64,000 nt of DNA from Lytechinus pictus (lineage: Eukaryota), in NCBI RefSeq assembly GCF_037042905.1, contig NC_087249.1, positions 15,872,001 to 15,936,000 on the forward strand, given 5' to 3'. Of the stretch, positions 39,201-62,896 are shown in pieces; positions within the stretch are counted from its first letter, which is position 1; every line of letters starts with the position of its first letter. The notes below the pieces were generated by a model, which worked only from the letters and a program-made list of their open reading frames with translations, did not search any database and had not been told where the DNA came from. A program made the translations under genes and the position numbers.

Positions 39201-42200
39201 GTGGTATATAAGCAAGACTAGTATAATTATCATGGATATGATATTTACCACATATCTAATTACTTCTGCACCGGCGATATATTCTGCGCTCTGCGGATCT
39301 CTGTACGCGGCGTCAAAGTTTACTTGAACACCGTTGATAGCAAGGAGAATGTAGGATATTCTTAACAGACGACTTGCTGTGAGGAGGTGAAAAAATGGCG
39401 GTACCAGCAGTTCGTTAGTGAATCCAATAATAAAGATATAGAATCCATGGCTAAAATGTTTCAAGCTTTCCTCAAACTTGGTTTTTTTAAATGTGATATT
39501 TATATTATTCCTAGATCGTTTAAAAGTGTGTAATTAAATTATTGTGTAACATTAAGGAATTAGCATTTTTTTATAGTGAAAAAATATTAAATTCAAAATT
39601 CCTGCCTGAAATTGAAAAAAAAATCAATGGGACATTAGATTACGATTTGCCCAAAAATAGAAATATAATATTTACTTCTTTACTATATTAATTTTACTAT
39701 CTTCTTGTATAGGTGTGACACAGAGATTGACCAACTGAAATATATATGAAAAAGCAAGATTTTTCTATCAAATTGTAAAAAAAAAGTGTGTAGTTTTATG
39801 TCTGTTTGTTAATTTTTCAAATTCCCCTGTAAGAATGACAATCATTTTTTGTATGGCTATCCTTTTTATTAACAACTTCTTTGATACTGAATTGTGGCTA
39901 GAAATTATGACCCCAACCATTCTTTGTAATAGTATTTTTATTCATACTTATACAAAATCTTCTATTGGTCATTATGATCTACTAAAAGTAAGCAAACGGG
40001 GGATTGGCCCTCACCTTTGCTGCATCGAGATACACCATTTCCTATTTCTCTCCTGAACCATGTGGTTCGACATCGGCACGAAGAGATTACACATCTTTCC
40101 TGTTCCAAAACACAGCTCTGGGAACATGACTCTGGTTAAAAATCCAAATTCCAAGATTTAATATCAGATGGGACCATTAAATGTCATTTGTTTTCATGCA
40201 ACCTTTCTTGTTCCAAAAATTTAATTCTGCTTTGAACTAGACAAGTTGTTTTATCTTAGAAACTATATCAACATAACTTTAAAAAATAACCAATGGCCCC
40301 CAAGTTCCTTTTACCATTTTCAGAAGTTAAATTGATTGAACACCGAGAAGTCCTTATTTTCTAGTGAGGTACACTGTGTGCAACCGAACAGGAATGTCAT
40401 TTTAATAAAATAAAACATAAAATCTTATATTGATAAAAAACAGACACTCATAATATTTTGTAATCACTATTTGCCCAATATTCTAAGTTAATCCACATGG
40501 TAAAACAGTCAATCAGCTCAAAGTTGCATTCAGCACTATTCCTGCATATGATCACGGTGATACCCAAAGTGGACTTATGTTCTGTACTCCACGCAGTAAT
40601 AGACCTATCTGAATCAAAGCAAACTGACCTACCTTCACATACGCCATTCACAGGAGCTCTGCCATCTTGACATACGCATACTCCTTGGAAGCAAGTCTGA
40701 GTATCCTCACAAACTACGTCATTGCACCTCAGATCTAATTCCCAGCGTAAGAAAAGTATGGAAGTATATATTAGTAGAATCAAGTAAACTCCATTTCTGT
40801 CTAGGGGTATCATTAATTTATGATCATTGGATGATTCCTAATATGTTAAGTAAATCAATCCTCACAAAAAGTAATAATATTCTTCATCGTGTTCATTAAG
40901 TCTGGTTCAATCCCGAGCCCTCTTGCAGGTAGAAAATAGAACCCCTTCAACATGATGTTCATGTTGAGAAGAAAGAGGAATAGTTAAAGGTTTGGGGTGA
41001 ATTATACAAGATAATGTAATTATAATGTAATTGTTATATTGCTAAGGAATTCGAATAACATTTACCATTTTGGCACATCATGCCTGTGAATCCGGAAGGA
41101 CAGGTACAGGTAAACGTTGTAGGCTCCTGATTACAAGTACCCCCGTTCATACATGAATCGATTTGACATGCTATTGTTGGAGTACCAGCTGTACAAGGAC
41201 AAAGCAATATATACACAACGTGCGTAGTGACATCAGTATATATATATATATAAATATATATTCTTTCTTTTTTTCGATTATTTCAAGTGAAGATTTTGAA
41301 CGATTCCCGCATATTTTCAAACTATATTTCCCTTGTTACGCTACCAATTATAGCATGTATAATGACAGTACCAAAGTATTGATATCTGATGTTCGTTTTT
41401 ATAAAGCTACAGGAGTGTTACAAATCACGTTAAAGTATTAACCGAGAAACGGGAATTTATACCCAGACATTTAAATCTAATGTCTAATTAACTATCACAT
41501 TGATAACGTATCATCAAGGTGAAATAAAGCAAAATAATCTACTTCGCAAACTGGCAAATTCATCTCATCATTAGCATGATGGGTAGGGGCACTCTGCGAG
41601 CAACTGTCCAAGAAATTGCCTTTTTTCTATAACGGTTTATCTGAACACGGTACAATTATAATTTAATCAATATAAGCATGTAATTCTAAGCCCTCTTGTA
41701 ATGATATATCTTTTAATAAAAAAGACAGGGAAGTAATATTACGACTGCACTGTGGGTTTTCTATGGAATTCTCATATCCCTCGTAACAGCTACACTGGAA
41801 AGTCCCCAGTCTATTGACACAGAAACTGTTAGCATCAGCACTGCATGGCAAAGTTGAACATTTATTGATACCTGTTGACAAAACGACGATGAAAGCGGTA
41901 TATAAATAAAAGTACATGTTATCTAGGACCACAATGAATAATGTTAATATTCGATTAACATTATATTGAATGGGGTTGTGATCGGTTTGTACCGTGCGTA
42001 TAAAAAAAAAGTTTACACTTTGAAAAAATCTTGTAAAATTATACATTTGTAATATCCTGAAGATTTTTCCACAGATCCATTTAAGCAAATGACGATATAA
42101 CTGTCGAAAAATATTTCCGCTTGAGTGAGCACCACTTACTTTTAAAAAGTTAGTGAAAAATGATTTGCGCAGAACTTTGAAATAGTTATGATATTAAAAG

Positions 42201-45200
42201 TATACCTTAATCATGAAGAACACGTATAACTTAGCTAGTAAAATTGATCTGAAGATATCTTTTACCTTTTTAAACTTGTTTCCTTGCCCAAAACACTTCG
42301 AAGGGTGCATTGCGCCCCACCCCACTCCCCCACACACGGAGGCCATCGTGACGATATTTGCTTTACACTGAGCTGTGATTTACATGAAATGGCTTAGGCT
42401 TGATTTTCATTTTGTTAATCATTGTCAAGCTTTGAAAAAGTGCGGAGAAACAAGTATTAAATGAAAAATGAAATGTAAACCCACTTCAAATGATAAAAAC
42501 TTAGTGAAAAAATGCTGGAGATGTCTGATATAAACTTTTGTTCAGATTCAGTTATGTCCTCAGATCCGGCTGGTACGAAAAGGGTAAAGGTCGTGCTTAC
42601 TAAGTGTTGAAATTTCAATTTGGGTGGCAAAATTGTTACAAAATGCTTGAATGTATCCGTTTTATTTCAATTGACTAAAATTGCAAGGGCAATGTATGAG
42701 AAATGTTTCGCAGGGTAAGTTTGATTTCGCCCTTTCCCCTTGACACAGCGTGAAAACGAGCATTTCTGCGCAAACAGATTTCTGCGAGCTTTACAAAAAC
42801 GGACAGTGCTCACTCAAGTGTAACATTCTGTCAAAACTTTTACTTTCATTTGATAGATAAGACCCAAAACCAAGATTATATGTGACAAAATTACCCACAT
42901 GTTGTATATTTTTTAATTCCCAGGGTTTTTTCAAAGTGTAAACTTTTTTTTGATACGCACTGTATAGTCCCTTTAATCTTTTTCTTTGCTGTATTTATTT
43001 GCATTAGTTTGCATAAAGCCTAAATTATTCAGGAATCCAAACCAACCTTGCAAGTATAAGTATATACTTTTCCTCAGTAAATGCCTATACTGATCTTATC
43101 ATCGCCCGGAGGGGGGGGGGGCAAAGTGTAAATTATAGTCGTCCATAGATTGAAAAATTACCTAAAACAACAACAAGAAATGGTTTCTTCGATCAATCTC
43201 AGGGTACTCTAAACGTTGGTAACGTTTCCCTGCCCATACAATTTCTCATATTATATTTTCATGACTAATACCCTTTTTAAGACCATGAGATCAATCGTAT
43301 TGAAAAGTTTACTTTTATACCCCTTATTTTGTCAATTGTATACCTTTAATGGACAAGCATGGTGTCAACTTCTAATGACGGTGGGAGCTCCCGTCTCCCG
43401 TACAAACTGTAACATTAAATGGGAGGTAAGATAATTGCCACCTCAGTAAAATATTATATTTTAAAATGTCCAAAGAATAATGGCTCCGTTTTATCCATAC
43501 AACCCTAAGAAGAATGGAATGGGGAGATGGGGAAAAACAGGAAAAGAAAATTAGTTGACAACCAACTTGCAAATATTAATATTTATTAAAGAAAAAAATC
43601 TTACTCTCGCATCCGATTTGGTCAGATAGAAGACCGTTTGCCATGCAATAAACTGTTGAATTCCCGACGAGATTATATCCAGTTGGGCAGCTAAAATCGC
43701 ATTCTGTATTCTCAGTAATTTTCGTTCCTGCCGGACATGCACTGTTAATATTGGTTAGTGGGGATATGTAGTCAACTTCACAGAGAACTGGGAGAAAAGT
43801 TTAACGAAATATGATTTAATATCGAAAAAAAATCTTACTTAACATGACTCTACTCAATCCATTCTTTGCTCAAGTTTTGAGCACAGATAGAATAGTACGA
43901 TTAAAATTAATTGACCCGTTAAAAAAGGGTTGCCATCAAACACATATCAAACATTCAAACAGGACTTTATTTTCAAATAATGAAACAAGCGTATTTGAGT
44001 CTTTCGCTTGATCTTTTGTAACGGTCCGATTTCTAGTTAAATTCGAAGGTACCGATGTTCAAGGCAAATGGATGAGGGAAAAACTGATCTTAATCTTACG
44101 TCAGGACGGGTCTGCTATAAAATGTGTAGATCTATTTATGAGGGGAAAAACAGTCGTTCCAGTTACACTTACTGGCAGAGGCGTCGATCCTGGGGGGGGG
44201 CAGGGGGGCGATCGCCCCACCAATGAAAATATTGGGGGGCAAACATATCGTTTTGCCCCCCCAATAATTCCGCATGTGTAAAAAATAAAATAAGATTGTA
44301 ATGTTACACATAAATCAGCAAGCGAGATCGAAATACACAATTCGTTCTTTATTTAAAATCATGCTCAAAATGTCCGCTTTTCAGATTGGAATATAAAAAT
44401 TTTCAGCTCGCGCTTCGCGCTCGCATCATTTCTGTAGCAAAAACCCATACTTTTCATGATTAATAGGTGAATAGAATGTCCCGTTTTCAGTTCTAAGCCT
44501 CAAAATAACTCGCGGTTCGATTTGCAATAATCTTTTGTTGGATATATATCTTGTTCTTAATTAAAAACGTCCATTAATCTCAATTTTTTTCTGATCAAAA
44601 TATCATAATTTTCAGCTCGCGCTTCGCGCTCGCATCTATTGTTTTTTAGATACCCATCTTAATCATTGGTACCAAAAATGCATAGAATATCAAGCTTACA
44701 GGTCAGAATATAAAGAAATTTCACCTCCGGCTCTCGGCACTTGCATTATCTGTGTAGTGAGATATGTATCCTCATGACAAACAGTCCTAAACAGGCACCT
44801 TTTTCCTGTTATCAGATCAGTATACAAAAAAATTTCAGCTCGCGCTTCGCGCTCGCATTAATTTGATGTTGAGATTTGTGNNNNNNNNNNNNNNNNNNNN
44901 NNNNNNNNNNNNNNNNNNNNNNNNNNNNNNNNNNNNNNNNNNNNNNNNNNNNNNNNNNNNNNNNNNNNNNNNNNNNNNNNNNNNNNNNNNNNNNNNNNNN
45001 NNNNNNNNNNNNNNNNNNNNNNNNNNNNNNNNTTGTGTGATCGAGCGCCTTTGGAAAGTTGATTAATGATTTTGCCCCCCCCCCCCCAATCTGAAAAATG
45101 GATCGACGCCCCTGCTTACTGGTACAATGCGGAAGGGATCCGGTAAGTTGTCCACCAACTCCACATCTTGCAATATCGTCACCTTCAAGAAGATATCCCT

Positions 45201-48200
45201 CAGCACATCCAAACCTACACTCAGTCGGCCAATCAACATTAGATTTCGAGTCACATGATCCGTTCAGAGGCAAAGTATATTCCCAAACAGGACATATGAT
45301 AACTGGAAATAATACGAAAGAAATGAGCATATCCAATTATTTGAATGTTCTCTTATGGTTAGGAGCATTGTAGATGGGCAATTCCATAAAATCAGGGGCG
45401 TAAATTAAAACGTCGATTCATCTTTAAATGCAGTCAAAGTGCTTAAATTGCCCAATTTTGCATTCTAAAAATGCAAACTTTCTTGTGTGTTCGCTCCGCT
45501 CCCGCGCTCAATGTAATCTTACAGGATTTTGGCCATGACAAATCCCTACGTTTAGCATATTGCAAATATTATATCCCCTTCATCATGAAAGTATGGTTAT
45601 AATACGTCCATGTACAAATTGTAAGATATCAATAACTTTTAAATATAGTTTGATCATAAACCAACTAAAACATCCTTTGAATACACTAGCGTGAATGTAG
45701 GGGGTCATACTAACCTAGCATCTTTGTGGATGCGGGGGATAATCTGTACAAAAAAATATCGGTATACTTTATACTTCCAGTTAAGAGTAGGCCTACGATG
45801 AGTTACTGATAACATTGACCAAATTAATACCGTTAATGAACACAGAGGCAAGTTAGGACAGCAATATTTCCCTCACACTTTACAGTTTTATCTGTTTATA
45901 GGAGGGTTTAAATCACATTAATCCCATAACAATCTAATAAATATTTCAAACATGATTTTTCCCCAATATTTTTATTGTTGCATCACCTCCCAATATAATC
46001 TTTAACCACATTTAACCGGTGAGCAAATGAGTTTTCATTGAACAAAATATGGACCGTTCAATACCTATTTGCTCTTTTTATTTCCTTTTCCTTTTCTTAT
46101 GTAGTTTAATTTATTGATAATCTACCTTGATCATATTCTGTAATTATATGCACACCATTTTGAAAGACTGAAGCAATTTTTCAAGGCTCGCCGACTTCGC
46201 TCACTCGAAGCATTTCTTCCATCATTACACACCCCTTGAAAGACGATTTTGGTCATCATTCTTTATTCCAACATTGAGAATTTGCTCGCTCGCATATTTA
46301 CTGTAATTCATATTTTATATCTTAACAAATCCATTACAATATAGCCTTCGAACAAATTCATGATAGGCTTTTAACTGAAAGATATAATGTACACATTTAC
46401 AGTATGTACACATACGTATACACTGCCCGTGATGTGATAATTACCCCGTGATCACTTAAAAGAGGTTTTTGGGCATCATTTTGTCTTCCAACTACTGAAA
46501 ATCTGCTCGCTCGCTTCGCTCGCATATTGATATTAATTGTAAATCATTGCTTTATAGCTATAACAAATCTTTATAGGCTTTTAACTGAAATATGGGGGAA
46601 TTATGTATATGGTCATAAACCACCGTATACACGTACACAGCCCTTGGTGTGGGGGTGTCCCCAAAATTTTGAATTTTCAGATCAATATATTGCTATCATC
46701 CACTGCCCCCACCCCCCCCCCCCCCCCCCCACTGCTCGGACCGGATTTACGCTAGTGCATTATGTACGTCCGACCACCTATATGTGGGACCTTCATGATT
46801 TTTTTTTTTGTCTCTGATTTCTTGTTCTTTTGACAGTCTGTAATTCCCCTAAATGACCATGACCTGGTCAGTTTATGAAGTGAAGTAAAACTTGAGAAAA
46901 ATGGGGGTCGGACGTACAAAAAAGTTGATAACTTTATGGGACTGCCCTCGTACATGTTGAGTTCGTTATGCTCTTGTACTTCAATCAAGATATTTTATTT
47001 CAACATACGTATGGCGGCCTAACCAATAAAAAACAAATCATTCCGCTCATCAAATTATACATATTTGCAAAAATAGAGAGGGAATAGAAGCGTGACCGCC
47101 TTACTAGTACAACTTTGGAAGTGATCCGTTGAACCGTCCACCCAGACCACACATTACAATATCACCCCCTTCAAGGACATATCCCGGTGCACACTCAAAC
47201 CTACATATCGTTGGCCAATCAACACTTGAGTTTGAGTCACATGACCCGTTCAGAGGCGGAATATAGTTCCCAACAGGACAGGGAATGACTAGAAATATTT
47301 CAAAAGAAATTGTATATCCAATTATTCAATCGCTATGGTTTAGAGTCATTCCGACTCTAAACCAAAGCGATGATCTGGGCGATTTAGTTCCGATCGACCG
47401 ATACTTGAAAACAAGTATTGCTTTCTAACAATATCTAGTGAGTCAAATAAAAACTAAAACACCCACGTTGATTAGCCACAGCCCAAAACGGGACTTCGTC
47501 GTTTACTGGCAACGTAGCATACCAATCATGACGTTCTTTCCAAAAATTCGTATGGAAAATTGATGCGACTTACTTATCAAAGTACATAATCCTTAAAAAG
47601 AGTCTCAGATTCTTAACTCACTATTCAACATTTTGATCGACTTATAATGTGATTGTGTCTACCAACTAAAAACAAAGTTCATATCCACAATATTTATATT
47701 ACAAAAAATGCGTGGCTGTCTTACTGTTACAATCTGGAATTGATCCGTTGAGCTCTCCACTAAGTCCACACCTTGCAGTATCGCTTCCTTCAAAGAGATA
47801 CCCTTCAGCACATTCAAACCTGCACTCCAATGACCAATCAACACTAGAGTTCGAGTCACACGACCCAGTCAGCGGCCAAGTATAGTCCCAAACAGGACAG
47901 ATGATAACTGGCAAGAAGAAATGGCAGCATATCCACTCATGTTAACGTAGTGTTTAAAGTGGTAATTTCACTTTGTTCTGATTTAAAAAAAAATTATTTT
48001 GGTTCTTAAAAATGGGCTAAACATTAGGCTTGTAGTGTAAAATACCATCCCAAAAGTTTCAAGGGATCATAATATCTACACGAACAATTTTTAAATCTTG
48101 GATATGTAAACCAAAGTTTGAAAATAATTTAGGGTTGGTTTCAATGACTATACAGCGAATCTGTGCACTTCAACGCATTAACTCTAGATTAACACAGCAC

Positions 48201-51200
48201 GAACTACATACAGCGTGTACAAGATATACATTGAATGTCTAGTGCAGCTAACAATAGTGTGGTATAGGAGATACACACAGCAGAAGGCAGTCGACGCAGC
48301 CAACGGACTCTTTGGAATTGGAGAAAATTGGTCATACGCCAAACCCGTCTACGAGACGGTTCTCAAAATCAGGCTTATAAATTGCCTCTTGTATCTAAAT
48401 CATAGTTTTTCATCCTATATTGTGGTCTGCTTCAGGGTTTTTGAGGACAAATACAGGCATTCATACACATGTTTCGTCTTAGTTTGAGAATTTTTTAAAT
48501 CGTCTGCTCACAAAGTGAAACGATCCCTTTAATTGACTGACACAAAATATTTGTTTCATGAAAATCTGGCACGCCAAATAACACCAGGACCACTTTCGAT
48601 TAACTCAAGCCCAAAAATATGGCTTACTTACTGACAGTAATAATGTAACCTACCAATTACGTAGTCCTGAAATACGTAAAACTTGAAAAGGGCATCGTTT
48701 CCATTAATGTCAATGCCAAAGTGACATGGTATCCACTTTGAACTACATCTGCTAAAGTCTTGATTCCCGAAAGGTCCATATTCTTAATTATTCAGCATTG
48801 CTATCAAATTTTGGTACAAAATCATACACAATAATAACAATGCTCATCTTTACAATTTCATATAGATATAAAAAAAAAAAGCGTCACTGTCTTACTAGTA
48901 CAACTTGGAAGTGATCCGTTGAACTGTCCACCCAAACCACACATTACAGTATCGTCCCCTTCAAGGAGATATCCCTCTGCACACTCAAACCTACATTCCG
49001 TCGACCAATCAACACTGGAGTTCGAGTCACATGACCCGTTCAGAGGTGTAGTGTAATTTGGAACAGGACAGGTAATGACTGAAAATATCCCCCAAAAGAA
49101 ATTAAAGAATATGCAATCATTTAAACTTTGCGTTAGAGAATAATATTAATAGAGTCACTTTTACACGTGAGTTTAAAATAAAACATCTTTTTCTCAACAG
49201 ATCCAAAATCCAGATATATATAGAGTACGAGTCACTTTGAATAGCATTATTGGATGTTCTGAAACAGGACTCGATTATGTGCTGATAACGGAACTGTTCT
49301 ATCGCATATGCTTATGGTATAAAGATTGAATAAGTATTATTTCAAAAGATGCAGAAGCAAGCCGGAGTTCCGTCAGTAGCCCCAGTTCAAACTTCTCAGA
49401 GTGGCGAATTTAAGCGCACAAATTATATCTATACCCTCCCGCCTATCTTTACAATATTCCTTTTGACTAGAGAAGTATAAGCGTGTCTTCCTTACTATTA
49501 CAATATGGAAGTGATACGTTGAGCTCTCCACTAAGTCCTGAATATGAGAAATTGACAATGTAACATATCAATGGTGCAGCCCACAAATATGTAGATGAAG
49601 AGGAGCATTATTTTCATAAATGTCACTGCCGAATAAACGTGACACCCACTTTGAATTACATCAGCCAAAGACATAATTCCCGAAATAGTCCAGTTTTCTC
49701 AATAATGCAGAATTTCAATCACATTTTGATACAAAAGATTTTCCAATAACAAAAAAGTCACTTTGCAGTATCCCTATTGATAAGTGAATAAAAAGAAGGG
49801 GAACTGGCTTACTGTTACAACGCGGAAGAGATCCATTAAGTTGCCTGTCATCTCCACAACTTGCTGTATCGTCACCATCAAGGAGATATCCCTCGGCACA
49901 TTCAAACCTACACTCAGTCGACCAATCAACATTAGAGTTCGAGTCACATGATCCGTTCAGAGGCCACGTATACTCCCAAACAGGACAGGTAATAACTGGA
50001 AATATTACAAACAAAGTAAGCATATCCTATTATTCAAACATTGTCTTCTGGTTCGGGAGCATGACCATGATGATAGAATCGCTTGTAAACGTTGAGTTCG
50101 TTCTGCTCTTGCACGTGAAACAAGACGTATGTTATTCAAAAAGGAGCCAAATCCACTTAGAGCATTTTTCAGTGAATCAAATATATTATACATGTTTTCT
50201 GATGATTAAACATTTGAAAAAGGAAAGCATTCAGAACATTTCTCTATCTTGTCTAAAGAAGCACAATTGTTTAATGCGATATGGTGCATTTGATTTCCTT
50301 CTCATAAGATACAGCCATATTTACCTTTAAAAACCATTTTGGTTAGAATTGGATTATATGTTTCCTTTTCAATTAAGGTATTTGTATGCCTTCCCAATAA
50401 TAATAATAATAATAATAACAAAGACAAATACATCTGTTCATATTCACATAACACAAATACATTCGTGATTGCCTTACTTGTGCAAGTCGGAAGAGATCTG
50501 TTAAGTCGTCCACTCTCTCCGCACCTTGCATTATTGTCACCTTCAAGGATATACCCTTCATCACATTCAAACCTACACTCAGTCGACCAATCAACACTAG
50601 AGTTCGAGTCACATGATCCGTTCAGAGGCCAGGTATATTCCCAAACAGGACAGGTAATGACTGACAATGTTTCAAAATAAATGAGAATATCAAATTATTC
50701 AAACTTTGGCTAATGGTTCGGGAGCATGATAGAGTCGTTTATACATGTTGAGTTCGTTCTGCTCTTGCCCTTCAAACAAGACATTTATTTCAACAGATCT
50801 GTCTATGCCTAGGAAATAAATTTATTCGGCTCCCCCTCACATTGTTCATATTTGCAAAAATAAATAAATAACATAAATAAATAAACAAATAAAATACAAG
50901 CGTTGACTGCCTTACTGGTACAACTCGGAAGAGATCCGTTAAATTGTCCGTCATCTCCACACCTTGTAGCGTGGTCACCTTCAAGGAGATATCCCTCTGC
51001 ACATTCAAACCTACACTCAGTCGACCAATCAACACTGGAGTTTGAATCACATGACCCATTCAGAGGCGTGTTATAGTTAGGGACAGAACAGGTAATAACT
51101 GAAAATATCGCAAAAGAAATCGTTGCATATCCAATATAAAAATCTTGCGTTATAAAGTTAAGAAACATGAGTGTCGGTTATGCATAGGCGATCGTTCCGC

Positions 51201-53793
51201 ACTTGCATTTGAAACCGGATATATATCTTAACAGATCTGAAAATTAAATCAGGACCCGTTGATTAATGACAAGGATTTTATATCGTGTAGCCTTGTAATA
51301 TACTGCTTAAAAATATAGTTTTAAGAGATATTAATGCAAAAGAGCGCCACGTCATCCACTTAGTACATCGTCTAAATATCTAATCCTCAAACGGTCCCAG
51401 ATTCTCAACCAAAAATTCAGTCTTATTATCAACTTTTGATGCGTATGCCTACCCTCCAATAGCGAGGTCATCTTTGCAATGATCTTATCTATCAGAAAAT
51501 ACAAGTGCGAGTGCCTACTTGTACAAGTTGGGAGGGATCCATTGAGCCGTCCGTCATCCCCACATCGTGCAATATCGTCCCCTTCCAGACGATATCCCTC
51601 GGTACATTCAAACCTACACTCAGTCGGCCAATCAACACTAGAGTTCGAGTCACATGATCCGTTCAGAGGCCACGTATACTCCCAAACAGGACAGGTAATA
51701 ACTGGAAATATATTTTAAACAAAGTAAGCATATCCTATTATTCAAACGTTTTATTTTGGTTCGGGAGCATGATCATGATGATAGAATCGCTCATAAACGT
51801 TGAGTTCGTTCTGCTCTTGCACGTCAAACAAGACGTATGTTATTGAAAAAGGAGCTAAATCCACTTAGAGCATTTTTCAGTGAATCAAATCTATTATACA
51901 TGTTTTCTGATGTTTAAACAATTAGAATTGAAAAAGGAAAGCATTCAGAACATTACTCTATCTTGTCTAAAGAAGCACAATTGTTTAATGCGATATGGTG
52001 CATTTGATTTCCTTCTCATAAGATGCAGCCATATTTACCTTTAAAAACAATTTTGGTTAGAATTGGATTGGGTTTCCTTTTCAATTAAGGCCTTTGTAAG
52101 CCTTCCCAATAATAATAGTAATAATGATAACAAAGAAAAAAAAATCTGTTCATTTTCACATATCAAAAATACATTCGTGATTGCCGTACTTGTGCAAGTC
52201 GGAAGAGATCTGTTAAGTCGTCCACTCTCTCCGCACCTTGCATTATTGTCACCTTCAATGATATACCCTTCATCACATTCAAACCTACACTCAGTCGACC
52301 AATCAACACTAGAGTTCGAGTCACATGATCCGTTCAGAGGCCAGCTATATTCCCAAACAGGACAGGTAATGACTGACAATGTTTCAAAATAAATGAGAAT
52401 ATCAAATTATTCAAACTTTGGCTAATGGTTCGGGAGAATGATAGAGTCGCTTATTCATGTTGAGTTCGTTCTGCTCTTGCCCTTCAAACAAGACATTTAT
52501 TTCAACAGATCTGTCTATGCCTAGGAAATAAATTTATTCGGCTCACCCTCACATTGTTCATATTTGCAAAAATAAATAAATAACATAAATAAATAAACAA
52601 ATAAAATACAAGCGTGAGTGCCTTACTGGTACAACTCGGAAGAGATCCGTTAAATTGTCCGTCATCTCCACACCTTGTAGCGAGGTCACCTTCAAGGAGA
52701 TATCCCTCCGCACATTCAAACCTACACTCAGTCGACCAATCAAAACTGGAGTTTGAGTCACATGACCCATTCAGAGGCGTGTTATAGTTAGGGACAGAAC
52801 AGGTAATAACTGAAAATATCGCAAAAGAAATTGTTGCATATCCAATATTAAAATCTTGCGTTATAAAGTTAAGAAACATGAGTGTCGGTTATGCATACGC
52901 GATCGTTCCGCACTTGCATTTTAAACCGGATATATATCTCAACAGATCTGAAAATTAAATAAGGACTCGTTGATTAATGACAAGGATTTTAAATCGTGTA
53001 GCCTTGTAATATACTGCTTACGATTATAGTTTTAAGAGATATTAATGCAAAAGCGCGCCACGTCATCCACTTAGAACATCGTCTGAATATTTAAACCTCA
53101 AACGGTCCCAGATTCTCAACCAAAAATTCAGCCTTATTATCAACTTTTGATGCGTATGCCTACCCTCCAATAGCGAGGTCATCTTTGCAATGTTCTTATC
53201 TATCAGAAAATTCCTTCTTACAAGCGTGAGTGCCTTACTGGTACAACTCGGAAGAGATCCGTTAAATTGTCCGTCATCTCCACACCTTGTAGCGAGGTCA
53301 CCTTCAAGGAGATATCCCTCTGCACATTCAAACCTACACTCAGTCGACCAATCAACACTGGAGTTTGAGTCACATGACCCATTCAGAGGCGTATTATAGT
53401 TAGGGACAGAACAGGTAATAACTGAAAATATCGCAAAAGAAATTGTTGCATTTCCAATATCAAAATATTGCGTTATATAGTTATTAAAGAAACATGAGTG
53501 TCGGTTATGCATACGCGATTGTTCCGCACTTGCATTTAAAACCGGATATATATCTCAACAGATCTGAAAGTTAAAGCAGGACTCGTTGATTAATGACAAG
53601 GATTTTTCATATCTTATAGACTTGTGATCACTAGCGTACCTACGGGGGGGGGGCAGGGGGGGCACTCTCCCCCCCTAACGAGTCACAACCCATGCAAAAA
53701 CGTATCTTTGCCCCCCCTGATGGGCTTGAAAAACCTTTTTTGCCCCCCCTGACGAGCTTTAAGACCTTCAATGCCCCCTGACGAGCTTGAAGA

Positions 53794-53828
<35 letters not shown>

Positions 53829-53873
53829 TGTCAATTTTTATCTGGTACGAAATCCTTTATTTGTGACCGAAGA

Positions 53874-53910
<37 letters not shown>

Positions 53911-56900
53911 TGTCAATTTTTTTGGCGGACGGTTTTGCCCCCCCCTGTGGAAAATCCTAGGTACGCCACTGCTTGTGATATACAAATTAAAAATATGGTT
54001 TTAAGATATATTAATGCCAAAGTGCGCAATGTCATCCAATTAGAACATCGTCTGAATATAAATCCTCAAACGGTCCCAGATTCTCAACCAAAAATTCAGA
54101 CTTATTATCAACTTTTGATGCGTATGCTTACCCTCCAGTAGCGAGGTTCATCTGTGCAATGTTCTTATCTATCAGAAAATACAAGTGCGAGTGCCTTACT
54201 TGTACAAGTTGGGAGGGATCCATTGAGTTGTCCATCATCCCCAATCTTGCAATATCGTCCCCTTCGAGTCGATATCCCTCTGCACATTCAAATGTACATT
54301 CCGTCGACCAATCAACAATTGAGTCCGAGTCACACGATCCGTTTACAGGCGAAGAATAGTTCCAAACAGGACACGCAATGGCTGAAAATATTCCCAAAAA
54401 AATTGTAGCAGATCTAATCATTCGCTTTTTAATGTTCGATCCTTCTGTAAGGGCACATGCAAAATTTATTTCTTTTAACACTAGAAAGCTAAATAGGCTC
54501 ACGGTCTCCTTGAATAACCTTGGCCAAGATCTTGAAATAAACTCTACATGTTACTGACAACAATTGTCATATTTCAACCAACTTGTTCGTGGGTTGAAGA
54601 AAAAAATATGAGAGTCGTTGTATTTTTTTGTAATTTCTGTTATTTCTTACTCTTCGATTGTCCTGCATCACAATTAAGCCACCGGTTTTTTTTCCATTAT
54701 GCCTATATGACCCAAATTCATCTCACACCACCTTTCTGACATCAATTTTCTAATTAGCCTTGTGTTAATTATATATCATATTTATATTACTTTATGTTTG
54801 TGTGCACAAAATACCGTCCATGTCAGATTATTGGAAAGGTCACGGCAACGCGACAGGACCTTTCATTAGTAAGGTGCCCTGGATGTACAGCCTAACGTAC
54901 TCCGACTTCTTCTTTGCATTGACGCCTCCAGGCGACAATGCTCTGTTGTTGTTCCGTATTCCTATTCCGCCTTCTTCTTCTTTGCATTGACGCCTACAGG
55001 CGACAATGCTCTGTTGTTGTTCCGTATTCCTATTCCGTCGTCTTCTCCTTCTGTCTTCTTCTGTCTGCTTCTTCCAAAAAATCCCAATTCGTTTAACACG
55101 TAGTTTTTGTTAGCTCTGCCCTGGCTCCGTCCCTCGTCCAAATTTATCCAAATTTGAGAGATATGTTGTCCAGCATCATTAGTTGTGCACCTCGTCTTCC
55201 ATTTTCCAAAATCACTCATGCATGACCATCCAGGCGCCATTTTGTAAATTTCAAGTCCATTTGCATACCATTCCTAATCCCGTCCTAACTCCCTTATCCT
55301 GCATGCTACATACTTCTAACAAATTGCAATAGATTGGTTAAGAGTTGCTCGTTCATATAAAAACTACGATTGCCCTTCAAAATGCCGTCTATTTGCCCTA
55401 AATTCAAATCCAAGATAGTTTACGTTCAAAATGTTCATATTTATTGAAATGCAAAGTAGCAAAATCGTAAAATAACCATAACTTCCTTGTTTTTATTCAT
55501 TTCCGTCTCATATTTTCATGGTTCACTAATGGTACCATCCTTCACAATTCAACAAAAATTTTACGCATCAGTGACCATTCAATTTACAAATAGTGCCCTC
55601 TATTGCAAAGTCAACAAATAGTAAAATGACAATAACTTTGTTGTTATCATTCATTTCGGTTTCATATTTTTAGGGCTGGTTTATGGTATCATCCTTCACA
55701 ATTCAACAAATTTTTACGCATCAGTGACCATTAAATTTACAAATAGCGCCCTCTATTGCAAAGTCAACAAATAGTAAAATGACAATAACTTTGTTATCAT
55801 TCATTTCGGTCTTGTATTTTCAGGGCTGGCTTATGATCATTCTTCATAATCCATATGCTTTTTACGCATCAGTAACCATTAAATTTTCAAATAGCGCCCT
55901 CTATTGCAAAGTCAACAAATAGTAAAATGACAATTACTTTGTTGTTATCATTCATTTCTGTCTCATATTTTGAGGGTATGCTAATTGTATCATTCCTCGT
56001 ATAAATCCATATGTTTTTACGCATCAGTGACCATTACCTTTAAGAAATAGCGCCCTCTATTGAAAAGTTGAAAATAGTAAAATGGCCATAACTTCCTAGT
56101 TTTCAATCATTATGGTCTCATATATTCAGAGTTTGTTAGAGGTACCGTCCCTGATAATTCGAACGTTTTCTTACGCATCAGTGACCATTACCTTAATAAA
56201 TAGCGCCCTCTATTGCAATAGTGAAATTGCTCTAACTTTCTTGTTTTTATACATTTTGGTGTCATATTTTCAGGGTTTGCCTATGGTATCATCCCTCATA
56301 TAGAAAATGGTTTTAACACATCAGTGGTCATTACCTTAATACATAGTGCCCTCTATTGAAAAGTTGAAAATATTAAAATGACAATAACTTCCTTGTTTTT
56401 ATTCATTTGGGTCTGATATTTTTAGGGTTTGCTAATGAAAACATTCTTCATGATTCATTTTTTTACGCATCAGTGACCATTACCTTTAGAAATAGCGCCC
56501 TCTATTGAAAAGTCTCAAAATTGAAAATTGCCCTACCTTCATCGTTTTCAACCATTTTGGTCTCATGTTCTCAGGGTTCGCTTATGGTAACATCTTTCAT
56601 AATTCACTGGTTCGTTACGCATCAGTGACCATTACCTTAATAAATAGCGCCCTCTATTGCAAAGTCGAAAAATAGTAACATGGCTCTAACTTTCTTGTTT
56701 TTATAGATTTGTGTCATATTTTCAGGGTTTGCTTATGGTATCATCCCTAAAATGCCAAATGTTTTTGTATGCATCAGTGACCATAACTTTTAGAAATAGC
56801 GCCCTCTATTGCAAAGTCGGAAAATAGTAAAATTGCCATAACTTTGTTATCATTCATTTCGGTCTTGTATTTTCAGGGCTGGCTTATGATCATTCTTCAT

Positions 56901-58695
56901 AATCCATATGCTTTTTACGCATCAGTAACCATTAAATTTTCAAATAGCGCCCTCTAATATTTTGAAAATGTAAATCATCTATAGTTTTCTCTCTACCTCC
57001 TTCTGTTTCTTGCCCTCTATTAAATCACAGACGTCAATGCATGTACATCGTTCTGATACGATTGCAGTTCTAGTCTTCTTCTTCTTCGTCTTCTTCCCTG
57101 AGTACAGACCACCTTCTGGTATATATTCAGGACTATGAGGTGACCTAACAAGTGCAATACACTGGGTGGACACCCTACTCTTTGACGAACATTTGCGTCC
57201 TTTCCTATCTAAGCGACCGGGCTACGCCGCCTCCTTTACCATGAAAAATTGGTCACTGTCACCCCCCCCCCTCCCATTATCAACGAATTGCATGAAGAAC
57301 GCATAATGGAGATCAACTCTCTTTTTTATTCATTTCAATACTTACTAATTAGTATTTTACAAGAGTGGATACACCCTTAGACCTTGAAAATACGATTTTT
57401 TTTCAATCTCTTTAAAGCTAACACCACTATTATTAAATAATTTCGAAAAAATTTAACACATATGTAAACTAATGAAGAATGTTCTGAGACTCTCTCGCTT
57501 GCCTTTATCGGATTTTGGTTTCATATTGAAAGCGCTTTTTTTTTCTTACCAAATCCTACAATCAGTAAATTTCATTATTTACTTACTTTCACATCCAATC
57601 TCGTCAGATAACAAACCATTCGACATGCATTGCACAGATGAATTCCCAACGAGATTGTACCCAGTAGGACAGCTAAATTCACATCGTGTATTCTCGGGTA
57701 TGGTTGTTCCTGAGGGACACAGACTGTTGGTATTATTCAATGGTGAACAGTAGTCAACCGGACAAAATACATCTGTATAATTAGATGGATAGATCATTAC
57801 AAATTGAGTACATCGTAACTTAAATAAAAGCATGCTGAAATGTTGAAAAGAGTCATATACATGTAATACAAAAAATATAATATATATATCTGCCCTTTTC
57901 CAAAATAACATACAATGTTCAATTTTTCGCTTTCAAGCAAAATAATTTGGCAAAAAAATTACAACAGTAATTGATTACTTCTGTCAAGCCTTGAGTGATA
58001 AGTGGCGAATGAACGAGCACACAAATACCACAATGTCACTCATAGAAAGAATAAGAGCTACAGATGCTATCAAACTTTTTTTATGACCCCCCCCCCCAAA
58101 AAAAAAATTAATAATAATAATAATAATCATAATAATAAATAAAGAATAAAATAAAATAACAACCCACACACAACGTCTCGAGGCAATTTTGATTTTATAT
58201 TCGGCTTTGGTAACCCTGATTTGATTTGTTTTATTTCGACAAGGTGCAATATACACACAATACAATACAAAGAATAGCTGAGCTCAAGAATTAAGATCGA
58301 TTTGAAACGTTGATGTTTTATTATTATCCATGACGTTTAGCTGAAAAAGATTTTTAATTTTTTCGAACACAAATAGGTGGCAAACATTTTAAAGAGGTTG
58401 TGATCATGTCATTTGTAAATGGACACACCCGCCGCTCAACCAACAGCGGTCAGTGCATGTTAACAATCGATTTCAACGATGGTAAAGTATCTAAACGCCT
58501 TCCTGGCATAGCGATATACTGTGAAATTCATATTATTCAAAATTGCAAGGACACGTAAAGGAAAGAATTTCAAGCTTTTCAGTGCTTACCTTGGGGAGGG
58601 GTAGGAACAATGCCCCGTCGTCGCCGCCGCCTTGCCGAAGCCTCTGAACCATGATGATAACAATAACACAAACAACCGTGATTAATCTTCGTCAT
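27070..58695 (-). CDS. Multi-exon gene (about 27 exons): Sushi/CCP x14 - EGF/EB-like x4 - SEA - EGF_CA - TM - Tyr-motif tail, type I membrane glycoprotein
   Basis: Exons are bounded by AG/GT sites with compatible phases and translate into recognisable domains in a sensible order. Three or four indels interrupt the frame in this assembly. Confidence 0.88.
28092..28663. mobile_element. CCCGGG-ended MITE nested in L2
   Basis: Inverted ends ACTTCCATTGACG..GATACAATGCGCGACC / GGTCGCGCATGGTATCCGTCAATGTAAGT. It interrupts AFVSS|HLDYC. Confidence 0.75.
28793..29750 (+). mobile_element. Helentron/HINE-like element with internal ~162-bp tandem array
   Basis: Subterminal IR GTCTCACCTGCAT / ATGCAGGTGAGAC, (GGC)n microsatellite, about 5 repeat units, T-rich ends. 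Confidence 0.7.
30317..31365. mobile_element. TIR element with 3-bp TSD (Academ-like)
   Basis: GCC|CAGTCAGT...ACTGACTG|GCC. Removing it restores L2 AVDRGEEAVLILLD. Confidence 0.75.
32398..32680. mobile_element. MITE ending 6 nt from an exon donor
   Basis: Imperfect inverted ends GGAAAGAACGG / CCGTTTCCGGTAGGG; internal CACACTGTG repeats. Confidence 0.5.
32687..32842 (-). CDS. Cytoplasmic exon
   Basis: LSYRKESSQSDVYYLYPGSSGNSSIKTGYSHRSRNPVSTNRRSVSSAIYNKA|gtaagt; 156 nt, phase 0-0. Confidence 0.75.
33212..33287 (-). CDS. Possible cytoplasmic exon (frame uncertain)
   Basis: acag|VDSNITESAPPAFRNLTLADSKHTH g|gtatag; 76 nt, so out of phase with the next exon. Confidence 0.4.
33526..33713 (-). CDS. 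Transmembrane exon
   Basis: VALIAGLVPGLGIVLVVIFTCACVTFF followed by basic stop-transfer RSQRKK; CAGCAG tandem acceptor. Confidence 0.88.
33951..34531. mobile_element. Kolobok-like MITE
   Basis: TTAA|AGGTCAAGTCCACCCCA...TGGGGTGGACTTGTCCT|TTAA. A degraded relative lies at about 18290-18755. Confidence 0.8.
34835..34873 (-). CDS. 39-nt stalk micro-exon
   Basis: tctttttcttcccctag|ASPSDPDETRSDI|gtgag; phase 1-1. Confidence 0.75.
35536..35694 (-). CDS. Calcium-binding EGF exon
   Basis: EITEVDECADGSHDCDTNALCINTDPGLGFGCLCNEGYDDLYPASLPGRYCFL; 159 nt. Confidence 0.9.
36000..37545 (-). mobile_element. 5'-truncated L2-clade LINE with (AAT)n tail
   Basis: LQKCISDIRNRMTVNKLKLNDTKTEF, LVFKSLNKQAPQYL and GDRTF..WNKLP; 3' stem GCGCTTT..AAAGCGC; MITE inserted at about 36399-36942. 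Confidence 0.88.
37868..38099 (-). CDS. SEA domain exon 2
   Basis: IPRVLKARGVGGVITSVVLGYFNGSLGVDSAV...SLRINMASLNVA; phase 0-1; GS-x-x-V motif. Confidence 0.85.
39249..39376 (-). CDS. SEA domain exon 1
   Basis: ASRLLRISYILLAINGVQVNFDAAYRDPQSAEYIAGAEVIRYV (F...L/Y.DP.S.EY pattern); phase 1-0. Confidence 0.85.
40015..40131 (-). CDS. EGF/EB-like exon
   Basis: ESCSQSCVLEQERCVISSCRCRTTWFRREIGNGVSRCSK; ccag|..|gtgag; 117 nt. Confidence 0.85.
40633..40734 (-). CDS. EGF/EB-like exon
   Basis: DLRCNDVVCEDTQTCFQGVCVCQDGRAPVNGVCE; 102 nt, phase 1-1. Confidence 0.85.
41066..41188 (-). CDS. EGF exon
   Basis: GTPTIACQIDSCMNGGTCNQEPTTFTCTCPSGFTGMMCQN; 123 nt, phase 1-1. Confidence 0.9.
41743..41871 (-). 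CDS. EGF-like exon
   Basis: INKCSTLPCSADANSFCVNRLGTFQCSCYEGYENSIENPQCS; 129 nt, phase 1-1. Confidence 0.9.
41992..42962. mobile_element. Tc1/mariner-like MITE
   Basis: TA|CCGTGCGTATAAAAAAAAAGTTTACACTTTGAAAAA...GTGTAAACTTTTTTTTGATACGCACTG|TA. Confidence 0.8.
43605..43787 (-). CDS. CCP exon 14 (divergent type, like CCP exon 1)
   Basis: LCEVDYISPLTNINSACPAGTKITENTECDFSCPTGYNLVGNSTVYCMANGLLSDQIGCE; 183 nt; AG/GT. Confidence 0.9.
44176..45114. mobile_element. hAT-like non-autonomous element on an exon-intron junction
   Basis: TIR CAG(A/G)GGCGTCGATCC; 8-bp TSD CTTACTGG; spans the N gap. Confidence 0.85.
44881..45032. other. Assembly gap (N run)
   Basis: 152 Ns. Confidence 1.
45120..45302 (-). 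CDS. CCP exon 13
   Basis: IICPVWEYTLPLNGSCDSKSNVDWPTECRFGCAEGYLLEGDDIARCGVGGQLTGSLPHCT; 183 nt. Confidence 0.9.
45376..46947. mobile_element. GGGC-ended TIR element (Sola2-like)
   Basis: GGGCAATTCCATAAA / TTTATGGGACTGCCC. It interrupts intron sequence that is contiguous in sister repeats; no clear TSD. Confidence 0.55.
47105..47288 (-). CDS. CCP exon 12 (184 nt, +1 frameshift near 47115)
   Basis: IPCPVGNYIPPLNGSCDSNSSVDWPTICRFECAPGYVLEGGDIVMCGLGGRFNGSLP, then an extra A (CCAAAGT versus CCAAGT). Confidence 0.8.
47725..47907 (-). CDS. CCP exon 11
   Basis: IICPVWDYTWPLTGSCDSNSSVDWSLECRFECAEGYLFEGSDTARCGLSGELNGSIPDCN; 183 nt. Confidence 0.9.
47958..48528. mobile_element. Kolobok-like MITE
   Basis: TTAA TSDs; imperfect TIRs AG..TTTCACTTTGT / ACAAAGTGAAA..CT. 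Confidence 0.65.
48896..49078 (-). CDS. CCP exon 10
   Basis: ITCPVPNYTTPLNGSCDSNSSVDWSTECRFECAEGYLLEGDDTVMCGLGGQFNGSLPSCT; 183 nt; not in the ORF track. Confidence 0.9.
49496..49537 (-). pseudogene. Truncated CCP exon remnant (3' 42 nt only)
   Basis: LSGELNVSLPYCN followed by GTAAG, homologous to the end of CCP exon 11. Confidence 0.7.
49813..49995 (-). CDS. CCP exon 9
   Basis: ITCPVWEYTWPLNGSCDSNSNVDWSTECRFECAEGYLLDGDDTASCGDDRQLNGSLPRCN; 183 nt. Confidence 0.9.
50478..50660 (-). CDS. CCP exon 8
   Basis: ITCPVWEYTWPLNGSC...CGESGRLNRSLPTCT; 183 nt; AG/GT. Confidence 0.9.
50916..51098 (-). CDS. CCP exon 7
   Basis: ITCSVPNYNTPLNGSC...DHATRCGDDGQFNGSLPSCT; 183 nt; AG/GT. Confidence 0.9.
51519..51701 (-). 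CDS. CCP exon 6 (chimeric)
   Basis: ITCPVWEYTWPLNGSCDSNSSVDWPTECRFECTEGYRLEGDDIARCGDDGRLNGSLPTCT; 183 nt; donor GTAGGC. Confidence 0.88.
52190..52372 (-). CDS. CCP exon 5
   Basis: ITCPVWEYSWPLNGSC...CGESGRLNRSLPTCT; 183 nt; donor GTACGG. Confidence 0.88.
52627..52809 (-). CDS. CCP exon 4
   Basis: Near-identical to CCP exons 3 and 7; 183 nt; AG/GT. Confidence 0.9.
53239..53421 (-). CDS. CCP exon 3
   Basis: ITCSVPNYNTPLNGSCDSNSSVDWSTECRFECAEGYLLEGDLATRCGDDGQFNGSLPSCT; 183 nt; AG/GT. Confidence 0.9.
53629..53971. mobile_element. hAT-like MITE
   Basis: 8-bp TSD CTTGTGAT; TIR CACTAGCGTACCTA / TAGGTACGCCACTG. Confidence 0.85.
54200..54381 (-). CDS. CCP exon 2 (182 nt, 1-bp deletion frameshift near 54243)
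   Basis: IACPVWNYSSPVNGSCDSDSIVDWSTECTFECAEGYRLEGDDIAR, then shifts. Reads TTGGGG where sister exons have TGTGGGG. Confidence 0.8.
54905..57076 (+). mobile_element. Helitron/Helentron-like element with ~150-bp x10 satellite
   Basis: IR GCATTGACG / CGTCAATGC, 3' hairpin and CTAG end, duplicated 68-bp head, array at about 55450-56960. Confidence 0.7.
57587..57772 (-). CDS. CCP/Sushi exon 1 (divergent type, 7 Cys)
   Basis: DVFCPVDYCSPLNNTNSLCPSGTTIPENTRCEFSCPTGYNLVGNSSVQCMSNGLLSDEIGCE; acag|..|gtaag; 186 nt, phase 1-1. Confidence 0.9.
58590..58695 (-). CDS. Putative first coding exon (leader, ...GSEASARRRRRRGIVPTPPQ)
   Basis: ATG at 58695 and strong donor CAAG|GTAAGC. It ends in phase 1, in frame with the first CCP exon. 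The hydrophobic stretch LITVVCVIVIIMV lies in the +1 frame. Confidence 0.65.
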
Positions 58696-61452: not shown

Positions 61453-62896
61453 GAGAGGCGTAACTACGGGGGGCACGCGTGCCCCCCCCCCCCCCAAAAA
61501 AAAAGGGGGGGGGGAAGAAGAAAAAAGGGAGAAAGACAGAAAAACGTCGTGGGGGGAGAATAAATTATTGTATATTTTATTATGCTATATCATATTAGAT
61601 AAAAAAAAATTTTCATAACTTTATGAAAAATAAATTCAGTAGGCCATAGAGCTTATGGGTAAAATGCCAATTCGTCTACTGCAAACTCGTCCACTCACCA
61701 CATGGTCTACTTTCATTTAGTCTAATGCCTTTACGTCAATCCTTATTTCGTCTAAAGACCATTTGGTCCATTAACCATTTTGGTCCAATCGTCACTTGGT
61801 CTAATCACCATTTCGTCTTTTACCATTTCGTCTAATGACCAGTTATTCTAATATCAATTCCATTTTCATTCATTTTGCACAATTTAGCCCTTAGTCCAAA
61901 TAAACCAAATGGTATATGGACTAAATGGCTATTGAACCAACTGGTTATCATACAGAAAGGCATCAGACATGTGCGGATGAGCTGATGGTAGACCATATGA
62001 CAGTAGATGAGTTGGCAAGTATTGGACGAATTGGCATTAGACAAATCTGAAATACACCGGGCTTATGAGTTCATCAATCCTGGTGCTCATTGTCAGTTTA
62101 ATAAAATAATCCAGCTGTAATAGAATATCCCGTTTTCAAGTTAAAATGCACCAAATATATTTCCTCGCACTTCGAGTTCTTATTGCATTATGTAGTGACA
62201 TGTTCTTCTTTTTCATGACTAGGCCTACTCAAAGTGGTTGCCCCTTTTTAAGGTTTGAATATAAAACATTTCCATTCCGTGATTACGTTCACATTAGTGG
62301 ATTGGTGAGATACGTCTGTTCTTCATTATTTCCTAAAAACAGTCACAATTGTCTTTTTGGGTGAATATATCAACAATTTTCAGCTCGCGCTTCGCGCTCG
62401 AATTTTTAAGTTAGTATGCATATGGTCTTAGTGAATTCCTACAAATAAGCCTTAGAATGCACCTCTTTAGGTCTGAATTTCAAATATTTTCAGCTCGCAC
62501 ATCGTGCTTGCATCATTTAGTAAGTGAAATACGTATCTTTTCATGATTGAAATGACTACAAAAAGTGTTTCATGTGTTTAGGTGTAATTCTATCAAAATC
62601 AGCAAGTGCTTGGCGCTCGCGTTAGATGACTATGACGAGATATGTATGCTCTTTATAATTTCCTAAAAGAAAGTCCTTAAATGTCGTTTTGGGGTCAATA
62701 TATACAAACATTTTCAGCTCGTCCTTCGCGCTCGCGTTATTTGGTAAGTGAGATAACTATACGTTTAATGGCACAGTCCTTAAAATGTCTCTATTAGGTC
62801 AGTATACCTGGCATTTACACGCGCTTCGCGCCCACTAAGTGACTAAAAAATTTGCTGGGGGGGGGGGGGCATGCCTCGACCCACGGTACGCCACTG
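61453..62896. mobile_element. hAT-like non-autonomous element
   Basis: 8-bp TSD TGTGAAAT; ends GAGAGGCGTAAC / GTACGCCACTG. Confidence 0.8.
61658..62058. mobile_element. MULE-like MITE nested in the hAT element
   Basis: 9-bp TSD G(A/G)GCTTATG; GGT...ACC ends; internal TCGTCTA/TAGA inverted motifs. Confidence 0.7.

Follow-up and report, generated by a model that had tools for sequence, protein, structure and literature searches.

We found that a 64,000-nucleotide (nt) stretch of the sea urchin Lytechinus pictus genome (contig NC_087249.1; hereafter the window) contains a minus-strand array of exons that each encode one CCP (sushi) module. Our data indicate that the region is probably the CCP repeat part of a gene for a single-pass membrane glycoprotein, in which the array grew by unequal recombination and the ectodomain varies in length. 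The gene is already present in RefSeq with cassette isoforms. A HMMER search with one unit returned a protein of 1088 amino acids (aa) with ten matching stretches, which together with its cluster mates carries the RefSeq accessions XP_063955958 to 965 and the automatic name 'sushi, von Willebrand factor type A, EGF and pentraxin domain-containing protein 1-like' (SVEP1-like; LOC129261738). The array units of the examined isoforms XP_063955958 to 965 are exact translations of window exons. In the literature searched we found no paper on LOC129261738 or on sushi-exon cassette use in sea urchins. We regard the locus as a clear but fairly ordinary case of known protein-length variation that adds no new class of mechanism; its modules are conserved, not diversified.

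The exon array was mapped by tblastn with one unit, and a direct-repeat search gave the same 12 copies in register. Coordinates are positions in the window, array units are numbered E1 to E12, and the two flanking exons, referred to here as bookends, are E0 and E13 (Table 1). A reading made from the letters alone (the sequence-only reading) had described twelve similar, symmetric exons of about 183 nt between two bookend exons, and its coordinates match the exon ends exactly. We found 12 full-length CCP units between 54381 and 45120 (tblastn, E values of 1e-24 to 1e-37), ten of which are intact and measure exactly 183 nt from AG to GT; E1 and E11 carry one-base indels. The unit exons are in phase 1-1, with two leading bases that complete a codon and one base left at the end. 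Each module corresponds to a single exon that is flanked by two phase 1 introns and has a length divisible by three. Because every unit is symmetric, its removal by skipping, splice-site mutation or deletion keeps the reading frame. Indeed, RefSeq proteins join the 183-nt exons exactly as phase 1-1 predicts and their isoforms differ by whole units. The two bookends resemble each other, as had been noted (45 of 61 aa shared, 74%), and are divergent from the array units (about 32% identity, about a third). The variation in donor sites is also as described: most exons carry GTAAGG or GTAAG, E4 carries GTACGG, and E5 carries GTAGGC.

This subfamily of units is confined to this locus across the 812-Mb genome. 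Only about six distinct unit types are present in the array, and recent copies are 98-99% identical: units E2, E3 and E6 are mutually 98% identical, and E4 and E7 are 99% identical. Each translated unit contains six cysteines, at positions 3, 16, 28, 32, 46 and 59, which would be the four framework cysteines of a CCP module and an extra pair. The position between Cys III and Cys IV that is usually occupied by Trp in CCP modules is occupied by Leu or Phe (GQLNGSLPSC or GQFNGSLPSC).

The predicted order of parts within this one gene is a signal peptide, a polybasic stretch, the CCP array, EGF modules, a probable SEA domain, a calcium-binding EGF module (cbEGF), a transmembrane (TM) region, and a tail. 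The predicted product is a type I single-pass membrane glycoprotein with an ectodomain formed mainly by the CCP array. The Pfam Sushi profile PF00084 matched protein P0151 well above its cut-off (E=6.5e-35; 119.8 bits, where the cut-off is 20.7; 8 stretches), and the only other Pfam matches in P0151 were EGF, EGF_CA, EGF_3 and hEGF. Among solved structures, the units match chains of CR1, CR2 and factor H. The region between the EGF modules is probably a SEA domain: the SEA profile PF01390 covered profile positions 11-98 of 106 at a sub-threshold score (14.1 bits, where the cut-off is 26.4; E=0.052), and the nearest language-model clusters to this region are SEA-domain proteins (0.78-0.81), which we treat as a lead only.

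The exon with the start codon and signal peptide (S1) lies 654-714 nt past the window end, equivalent to 64654-64714. A candidate signal peptide inside the window, at 62846-62878, was rejected as a spurious poly-C match. Straight after the predicted signal peptide is a run of five or six Arg followed by prolines, which is found in L. pictus, Lytechinus variegatus (P0201 residues 23-37) and Strongylocentrotus purpuratus (P0154 residues 23-38). This polybasic run might serve for propeptide cleavage or for the binding of glycosaminoglycans.

Two protein identities suggested by database names were rejected. A C-type lectin domain was detected by Pfam neither in P0151 nor in the N-terminal 100 residues of the full-length protein from L. 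variegatus, and the order of modules is CCPs first and then EGFs; the protein is thus not a selectin. Pfam also found no von Willebrand factor type A (vWA), pentraxin or HYR domain in P0151, which argues against SVEP1/polydom and indicates that the RefSeq name is a similarity label only.

We found evidence for the origin of the array within the array itself. A self-comparison of the window revealed two copies of a 1.71-kb block of B, C and A units (49807-51711 and 51513-53431). The copies are 92% identical over 1.9 kb, and inside the block the exons are 98-99% and the introns 93-98% identical. Unit E8 lies at the end of this higher-order repeat. Over the first 91 nt it matches E5 at 98% identity and over the last 92 nt at only 77%, and its downstream intron is unrelated. 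As judged from these alignments, E8 is a hybrid module, with a putative crossover or conversion tract that ends in the conserved exon core.

The corresponding locus in L. variegatus (L012) reads (A-B-C)x5 and A-B, after which come a unit like E10, a wrecked unit like E11, and the bookend. There are about five A-B-C copies in L. variegatus and about two in L. pictus. Like CR1, the locus has a higher-order CCP repeat with copy-number change, as seen in the tandem block, the chimeric E8, and the difference between species. In a maximum-likelihood tree, types A, B, C and E10 each form a clade with units from both species (bootstrap 96-100%), and copies within each type group by species. Since each of these four clades holds both species, the unit types are older than the species split (dS of about 0.1); since copies group by species within a type, copy number has changed since the split or copies were homogenized. 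A false haplotype duplication in the assembly was judged unlikely, given an E5-type A-to-B junction in RNA and the five copies in L. variegatus.

In L. variegatus, all four full type C exons carry AT instead of GT at the donor site, and no RefSeq model of that species includes them. Comparison of the two species gives 14 nonsynonymous and 7 synonymous differences for type C (summed over four comparisons that are not independent), versus 7 nonsynonymous and 22 synonymous differences for type B. Type C is a unit that is occasionally skipped in L. pictus and switched off in its sister species.

We propose that unequal homologous recombination of a three-exon A-B-C block (1.7 kb) expanded the array, that crossovers inside the conserved exon core can yield chimeric modules such as E8, and that copy number was altered after the split from L. 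variegatus. On this account, single units are missing from some L. pictus transcripts, the clearest case being the type C exons with their especially weak splice signals, the weakest in the array, and in L. variegatus each type C exon, being without a GT donor, is permanently omitted. The predicted outcome is a rod-like ectodomain of variable length and module number, the modules of which are under purifying selection.

Seven RefSeq isoforms, all of them computed models, were mapped onto the window exons. The longest isoform (1149 aa) is read from E3-E4-E5-E6-E7-E8-E9-E10-E12-E13, and a 1148-aa form has the same exons. Four 1088-aa isoforms each lack one unit (E4, E6, E7 or E9), and a 1027-aa isoform lacks both E6 and E9. 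The steps in isoform length are whole 61-aa units, one or two, and the modelled mRNAs carry 8-10 units in series. E2, which is intact, and E11, which is frameshifted, are in none of the seven. E2 resembles the most upstream intact units of L. variegatus (V2 and V3, at L012:9676-10901) in that all have open frames and consensus splice sites and are in no RefSeq model examined; their absence reflects either true skipping or a failure of short-read modelling at the start of the array.

Public RNA runs were aligned to positions 48500-54499. The X1 transcript contigs consist almost only of exons, and contain two GT..AG joints at exact exon borders. One joint (51098 to 51519) connects E5 to E6 and is colinear with the reference. 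The other (51701 to 52627) joins a type B unit, E3, to a type A unit, E5, and leaves out the type C unit E4. Over 29 nt, the A side of this B-to-A junction differs from the start of a C exon at 4 positions. A mis-mapped constitutive junction cannot explain the joint because no colinear reading of the reference has a B-to-A junction and a C-exon start would require 4 mismatches. Furthermore, one constant exon of the gene is present in 20 runs from six studies under two species labels. Given the X1 joints and the presence of the constant exon in these runs, the gene is transcribed and spliced, and type C units are at least sometimes omitted. Cassette use of the units, as the sequence-only reading had proposed, is supported: RefSeq models skip E4, E6, E7, E9, or E6 with E9, and one X1 contig skips a C exon. 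We infer that this skipping probably reflects regulated splicing and not allelic structure.

Donor strength was considered as a predictor of skipping and rejected, as E5 has a weak donor (GTAGGC) yet is never skipped, and E6, E7 and E9 have consensus donors yet are skipped. It does fit E4 and the donor-dead C exons of L. variegatus.

Several observations weigh against the explanation proposed above. Depth was zero on all array exons in three large same-species RNA-seq runs (X5-X7), each sampled at ~6%, which indicates low or restricted expression. The RefSeq isoforms were modelled from short reads within a repeat in which units are 98-99% alike, and the skips of E4 and E7, which have near-identical junction sequences, could represent one and the same event. 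Differences in array haplotype among the animals that gave the RNA would have the same appearance as skipping. E1 raises a further difficulty. The single base missing after 54244 eliminates Cys III and causes a frameshift; in the assembled sequence, translation from the true ATG ends at codon 174 when E1 is retained in the mRNA. Every RefSeq open reading frame begins at an ATG inside E1, and hence is without a signal peptide, because the E1 frameshift blocks reading from the true ATG.

The reads of X5-X7 fall only on the intronic repeat at 53500-54100, on both strands, with many variants and loose ends. Such coverage suits a dispersed repeat that is transcribed, and would not be expected of this gene. 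A search for transcript fragments among protein sequences, with the L. variegatus N-terminus and a piece of two units as queries, yielded a single fragment, from S. purpuratus.

The apparent skipping might instead reflect structural alleles, in which the RNA donors carried haplotypes that had lost units through unequal crossing-over, each of them spliced constitutively. This is consistent with the sharply different copy number of the two Lytechinus species and with the recombination of E8 within an exon. It also accords with X1 transcripts that differ inside E1 (a nonsynonymous difference at 54293, and alignment lost at 54244), and with an older L. pictus model (P0155, XP_054755757.1) that is 96% identical to the current isoforms and joins E10 directly to E13, without E12. 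However, at least five skipping patterns are modelled on one reference, the splice signals of type C are visibly weaker, and the loss of donors in L. variegatus shows that the spliceosome can bypass a unit. We consider structural alleles a rather unlikely explanation for the skipping.

The state of E1, together with E11, the relic at 49.5 kb and the unused E2, all dead or idle, could also mean that the reference haplotype carries a decaying or null gene in which the E1 frameshift severs the signal peptide from the remainder. The early stop and the frameshift in E11 point in this direction, as do the counterparts of E1 and E11 in L. variegatus, the former a fragment only and the latter a wreck that is broken more heavily than E11 of L. 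pictus. Decay is, however, hard to reconcile with constraint on the protein (omega of 0.33 in the constant part and 0.14-0.32 in the units) or with the intact state of all other exons and splice sites in a gene that is transcribed and spliced. Omission of E1 restores and keeps the full frame. Moreover, a 519-nt X1 contig runs from the upstream exons into E1, and its alignment ends at 54244, with eight letters over; at 54293 the contig has a nonsynonymous difference from the reference, with the base that is common to all other units. The contig leaves the reference at the deletion base, which suggests that the transcribed allele differs from the reference at E1, as a real allele or through an assembly error. 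We consider a null gene unlikely.

Array haplotypes of differing unit number might act together with regulated skipping to give animal- or cell-type-specific sets of ectodomain lengths and module orders, in a surface receptor for self/non-self or complement-type recognition. We consider this improbable; if true, it would be a route to receptor diversity through length and valency, distinct from Dscam-type exclusivity.

A single constitutive isoform, with the isoform models and the skipping contig produced by short-read mapping or assembly artefacts among near-identical units, would be favored by the high identity of E2, E3 and E6 (98%) and of E4 and E7 (99%). Nine of the X1 contigs can be placed at two positions in the aligned stretch, and an X1 contig with an A-to-B joint matches E3 better than E6 at 51046. 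The B-to-A junction is nevertheless found in no colinear reading of the reference and its A side differs from the C-exon start at 4 of 29 positions, and the modelled A-to-C junction (E6 skipped) and E8-to-E10 junction (E9 skipped) are also new junction types. We give little credence to artefact as the whole explanation.

The sequence-only reading had placed differences among units in two patches and had likened the array to diversified invertebrate receptors. The first of these claims holds: columns with three or more residues make up 12 of 23 in the patches and 2 of 37 in the core (Fisher p=5e-5, with patches defined after seeing the data). We calculated pooled Nei-Gojobori estimates of the proportions of nonsynonymous (pN) and synonymous (pS) differences and of the ratio of their rates (dN/dS) for the seven distinct L. 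pictus units, in which the patches comprise 23 codons and the core 37. In the two patches pN is 0.229, pS is 0.510 and dN/dS is 0.32; in the core pN is 0.074, pS is 0.392 and dN/dS is 0.14. Positive selection in the patches is rejected by these values, and the comparison of dN/dS among exons that had been suggested, made here pooled and not site-wise, shows no diversifying selection. Since the core protein is conserved while synonymous sites differ, the pattern indicates purifying selection and not merely recent copying. Patch variability is what relaxed constraint in predicted loops would produce, not diversifying selection. In the constant part, comparison of L. pictus with L. variegatus over 555 codons gives dS of 0.107, dN of 0.035 and omega of 0.33. 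E0 has 10 nonsynonymous and 2 synonymous differences, counts too few to interpret.

The likeness to diversified receptors did not hold, and a hypervariable, Dscam-like recognition repertoire is not supported. Dscam1 and arthropod hypervariable clusters do share with this array tandem duplicated exons that encode a whole or half extracellular domain and are used alternatively. Dscam uses one exon per cluster, has constant length, and has strongly diverged exons, whereas the units here are concatenated, vary in number, and are under purifying selection. Clustering of differences in two loop patches, the several skipping patterns, and the expanded and diversified immune gene families of sea urchins (e.g., Sp185/333; PMC3342357) would suit an immune receptor in which combinations of distinct CCP cassettes give many recognition specificities per animal, but such a receptor is very improbable given that patch dN/dS shows no nonsynonymous excess, there are about six unit types with recent copies 98-99% identical, 8-10 units are used in series per mRNA and are not mutually exclusive, and the sister species has fixed a simple A-B alternation.

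CR1 and the selectins appear to be the closest analogues of this gene. CR1 is a type I membrane protein formed almost wholly of CCP modules, with a higher-order repeat amplified by unequal crossing-over. It is also the best match among solved structures (E=7.6e-55), and resembles the gene described here in that CCP modules are organized in a higher-order repeat and length variants differ by whole blocks. Copy-number variation of the long homologous repeats of CR1 has been described (PMC3265835). The CR1 repeat comprises 7 CCPs (about 18 kb) and varies among alleles within a species, while the repeat here comprises 3 exons (1.7 kb) and varies between species and transcripts; furthermore, EGF, SEA-like and cbEGF modules follow the array here.

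In the selectins, each CCP module has six cysteines and an exon of its own, and the number of modules varies among members and species; P-selectin has a splice form without one CCP exon. RefSeq calls one L. variegatus isoform 'P-selectin-like', and E-selectin is matched with E=1.2e-9. Unlike selectins, the protein has no C-type lectin, and its mature N-terminus would be the polybasic and proline stretch followed directly by a CCP module. SVEP1 likewise contains many CCP modules with EGF and cbEGF modules, but has about 3,500 residues versus about 1,150-1,220 here, and its vWA, pentraxin and HYR domains were not found here.

The L. variegatus ortholog XP_041465278 (L012) and S. purpuratus XP_030832897 have the same architecture, with the signal peptide, RRRRRR, the bookends and the constant part. 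Units of types A, B and C are all shared with L. variegatus, but the C exons there are donor-dead and the protein contains (A-B)x4 and one further unit. In S. purpuratus, bookend-type and array-type modules alternate along the array.

In one gene and two sister species, this locus displays the steps by which a receptor can change length: block amplification, crossover within an exon, facultative skipping, and permanent silencing. It is a useful small model of how symmetric exons convert the instability of a DNA repeat into in-frame protein variation. It is also a warning that short-read gene models undercount or misassign units in such arrays.

Table 1. Exons and other features of the L. pictus CCP array gene, by position in the window.
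Feature	Position	Strand	Remarks
S2	58590..58643	-	End of signal region, polybasic RRRRRR, proline-rich stretch; located by tblastn with L. variegatus and S. purpuratus N-termini, splice sites read
E0	57587..57772	-	Upstream bookend CCP exon, 186 nt, phase 1-1
E1	54200..54381	-	Old type A unit, 182 nt, 1-nt deletion after 54244
E2	53239..53421	-	Type B unit (VPNYNT), intact, consensus splice sites; in no RefSeq isoform examined
E3	52627..52809	-	Type B unit; in every isoform examined
E4	52190..52372	-	Type C unit, donor GTACGG; skipped in P0197 (XP_063955962.1) and X1 contig
E5	51519..51701	-	Type A unit, donor GTAGGC; in every isoform examined
E6	50916..51098	-	Type B unit; skipped in isoforms P0204 and P0153
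E7	50478..50660	-	Type C unit, donor GTAAGG; skipped in P0001 (XP_063955964.1)
E8	49813..49995	-	Chimeric unit
Relic of unit 3' end	49491..49538	-	GLSGELNVSLPYCN, 48 nt, GTAAGG donor, without 5' part
E9	48896..49078	-	Unit VPNYTT; skipped in isoforms P0203 and P0153
E10	47725..47907	-	Unit orthologous to L. variegatus V16 (91% nt identity)
E11	47105..47288	-	Pseudo-exon, 184 nt, 1-nt insertion and stops; in no isoform examined
E12	45120..45302	-	Last array unit
E13	43605..43787	-	Downstream bookend CCP exon
Constant 3' part of gene	32684..41869	-	Approximate limits of high-scoring segment pairs
EGF-like exons	41723-41869, 41067-41195, about 40580-40700	-	
Candidate SEA domain	39246-39377 and 37869-38099	-	
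cbEGF	35534-35722	-	
TM	33523-33714	-	
Tail	from 32845 downwards	-	Ser/Tyr-rich

The 3' end of the array may be unreliably assembled, because an assembly gap (152 N, 44881-45032) lies 88 nt downstream of E12 and the older L. pictus model is without E12. This older model, P0155, also has a stretch of ~150 aa in its cytoplasmic tail (residues about 540-700) that neither the current isoforms nor L. variegatus have. This stretch looks like a read-through into retroelement-type sequence and is probably an annotation error.

Introns at the 5' end of the array contain repeats. The intron between E0 and E1 holds a tandem repeat at 55450-56956, with nested periods of ~150, 301 and 452 nt in 3-5 copies of ~75% identity, and a 68-nt repeat at 54902-55050. 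The repeat element between E1 and E2 (53500-54100) includes a 29-nt tandem repeat at 53707-53801 and long poly-T and poly-C/G runs.

Other, far larger CCP exon arrays are found on other chromosomes, at C19:13514628-13711239 and on C11 near 13.60-13.84, 15.58-15.90 and 31.74-31.77 Mb, with exons that are 31-48% identical to this family. The C19 array has two alternating kinds of exon with a period of ~1.53 kb, and dozens of matches with near-identical scores. Given these larger arrays, arrays of one-domain sushi exons are a common feature of this genome, and the one described here is far less repetitive than some of the others.

Isoforms also vary close to the membrane. Two L. variegatus isoforms of 1166 and 1165 aa (P0152 and P0200) differ from P0201 in that they are without a 53-aa membrane-proximal calcium-binding EGF exon. 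Differences of 1 aa between isoforms (1219/1218 and 1166/1165 aa in L. variegatus, 1149/1148 aa in L. pictus) look like the use of tandem NAGNAG-type acceptors just upstream of the TM region.

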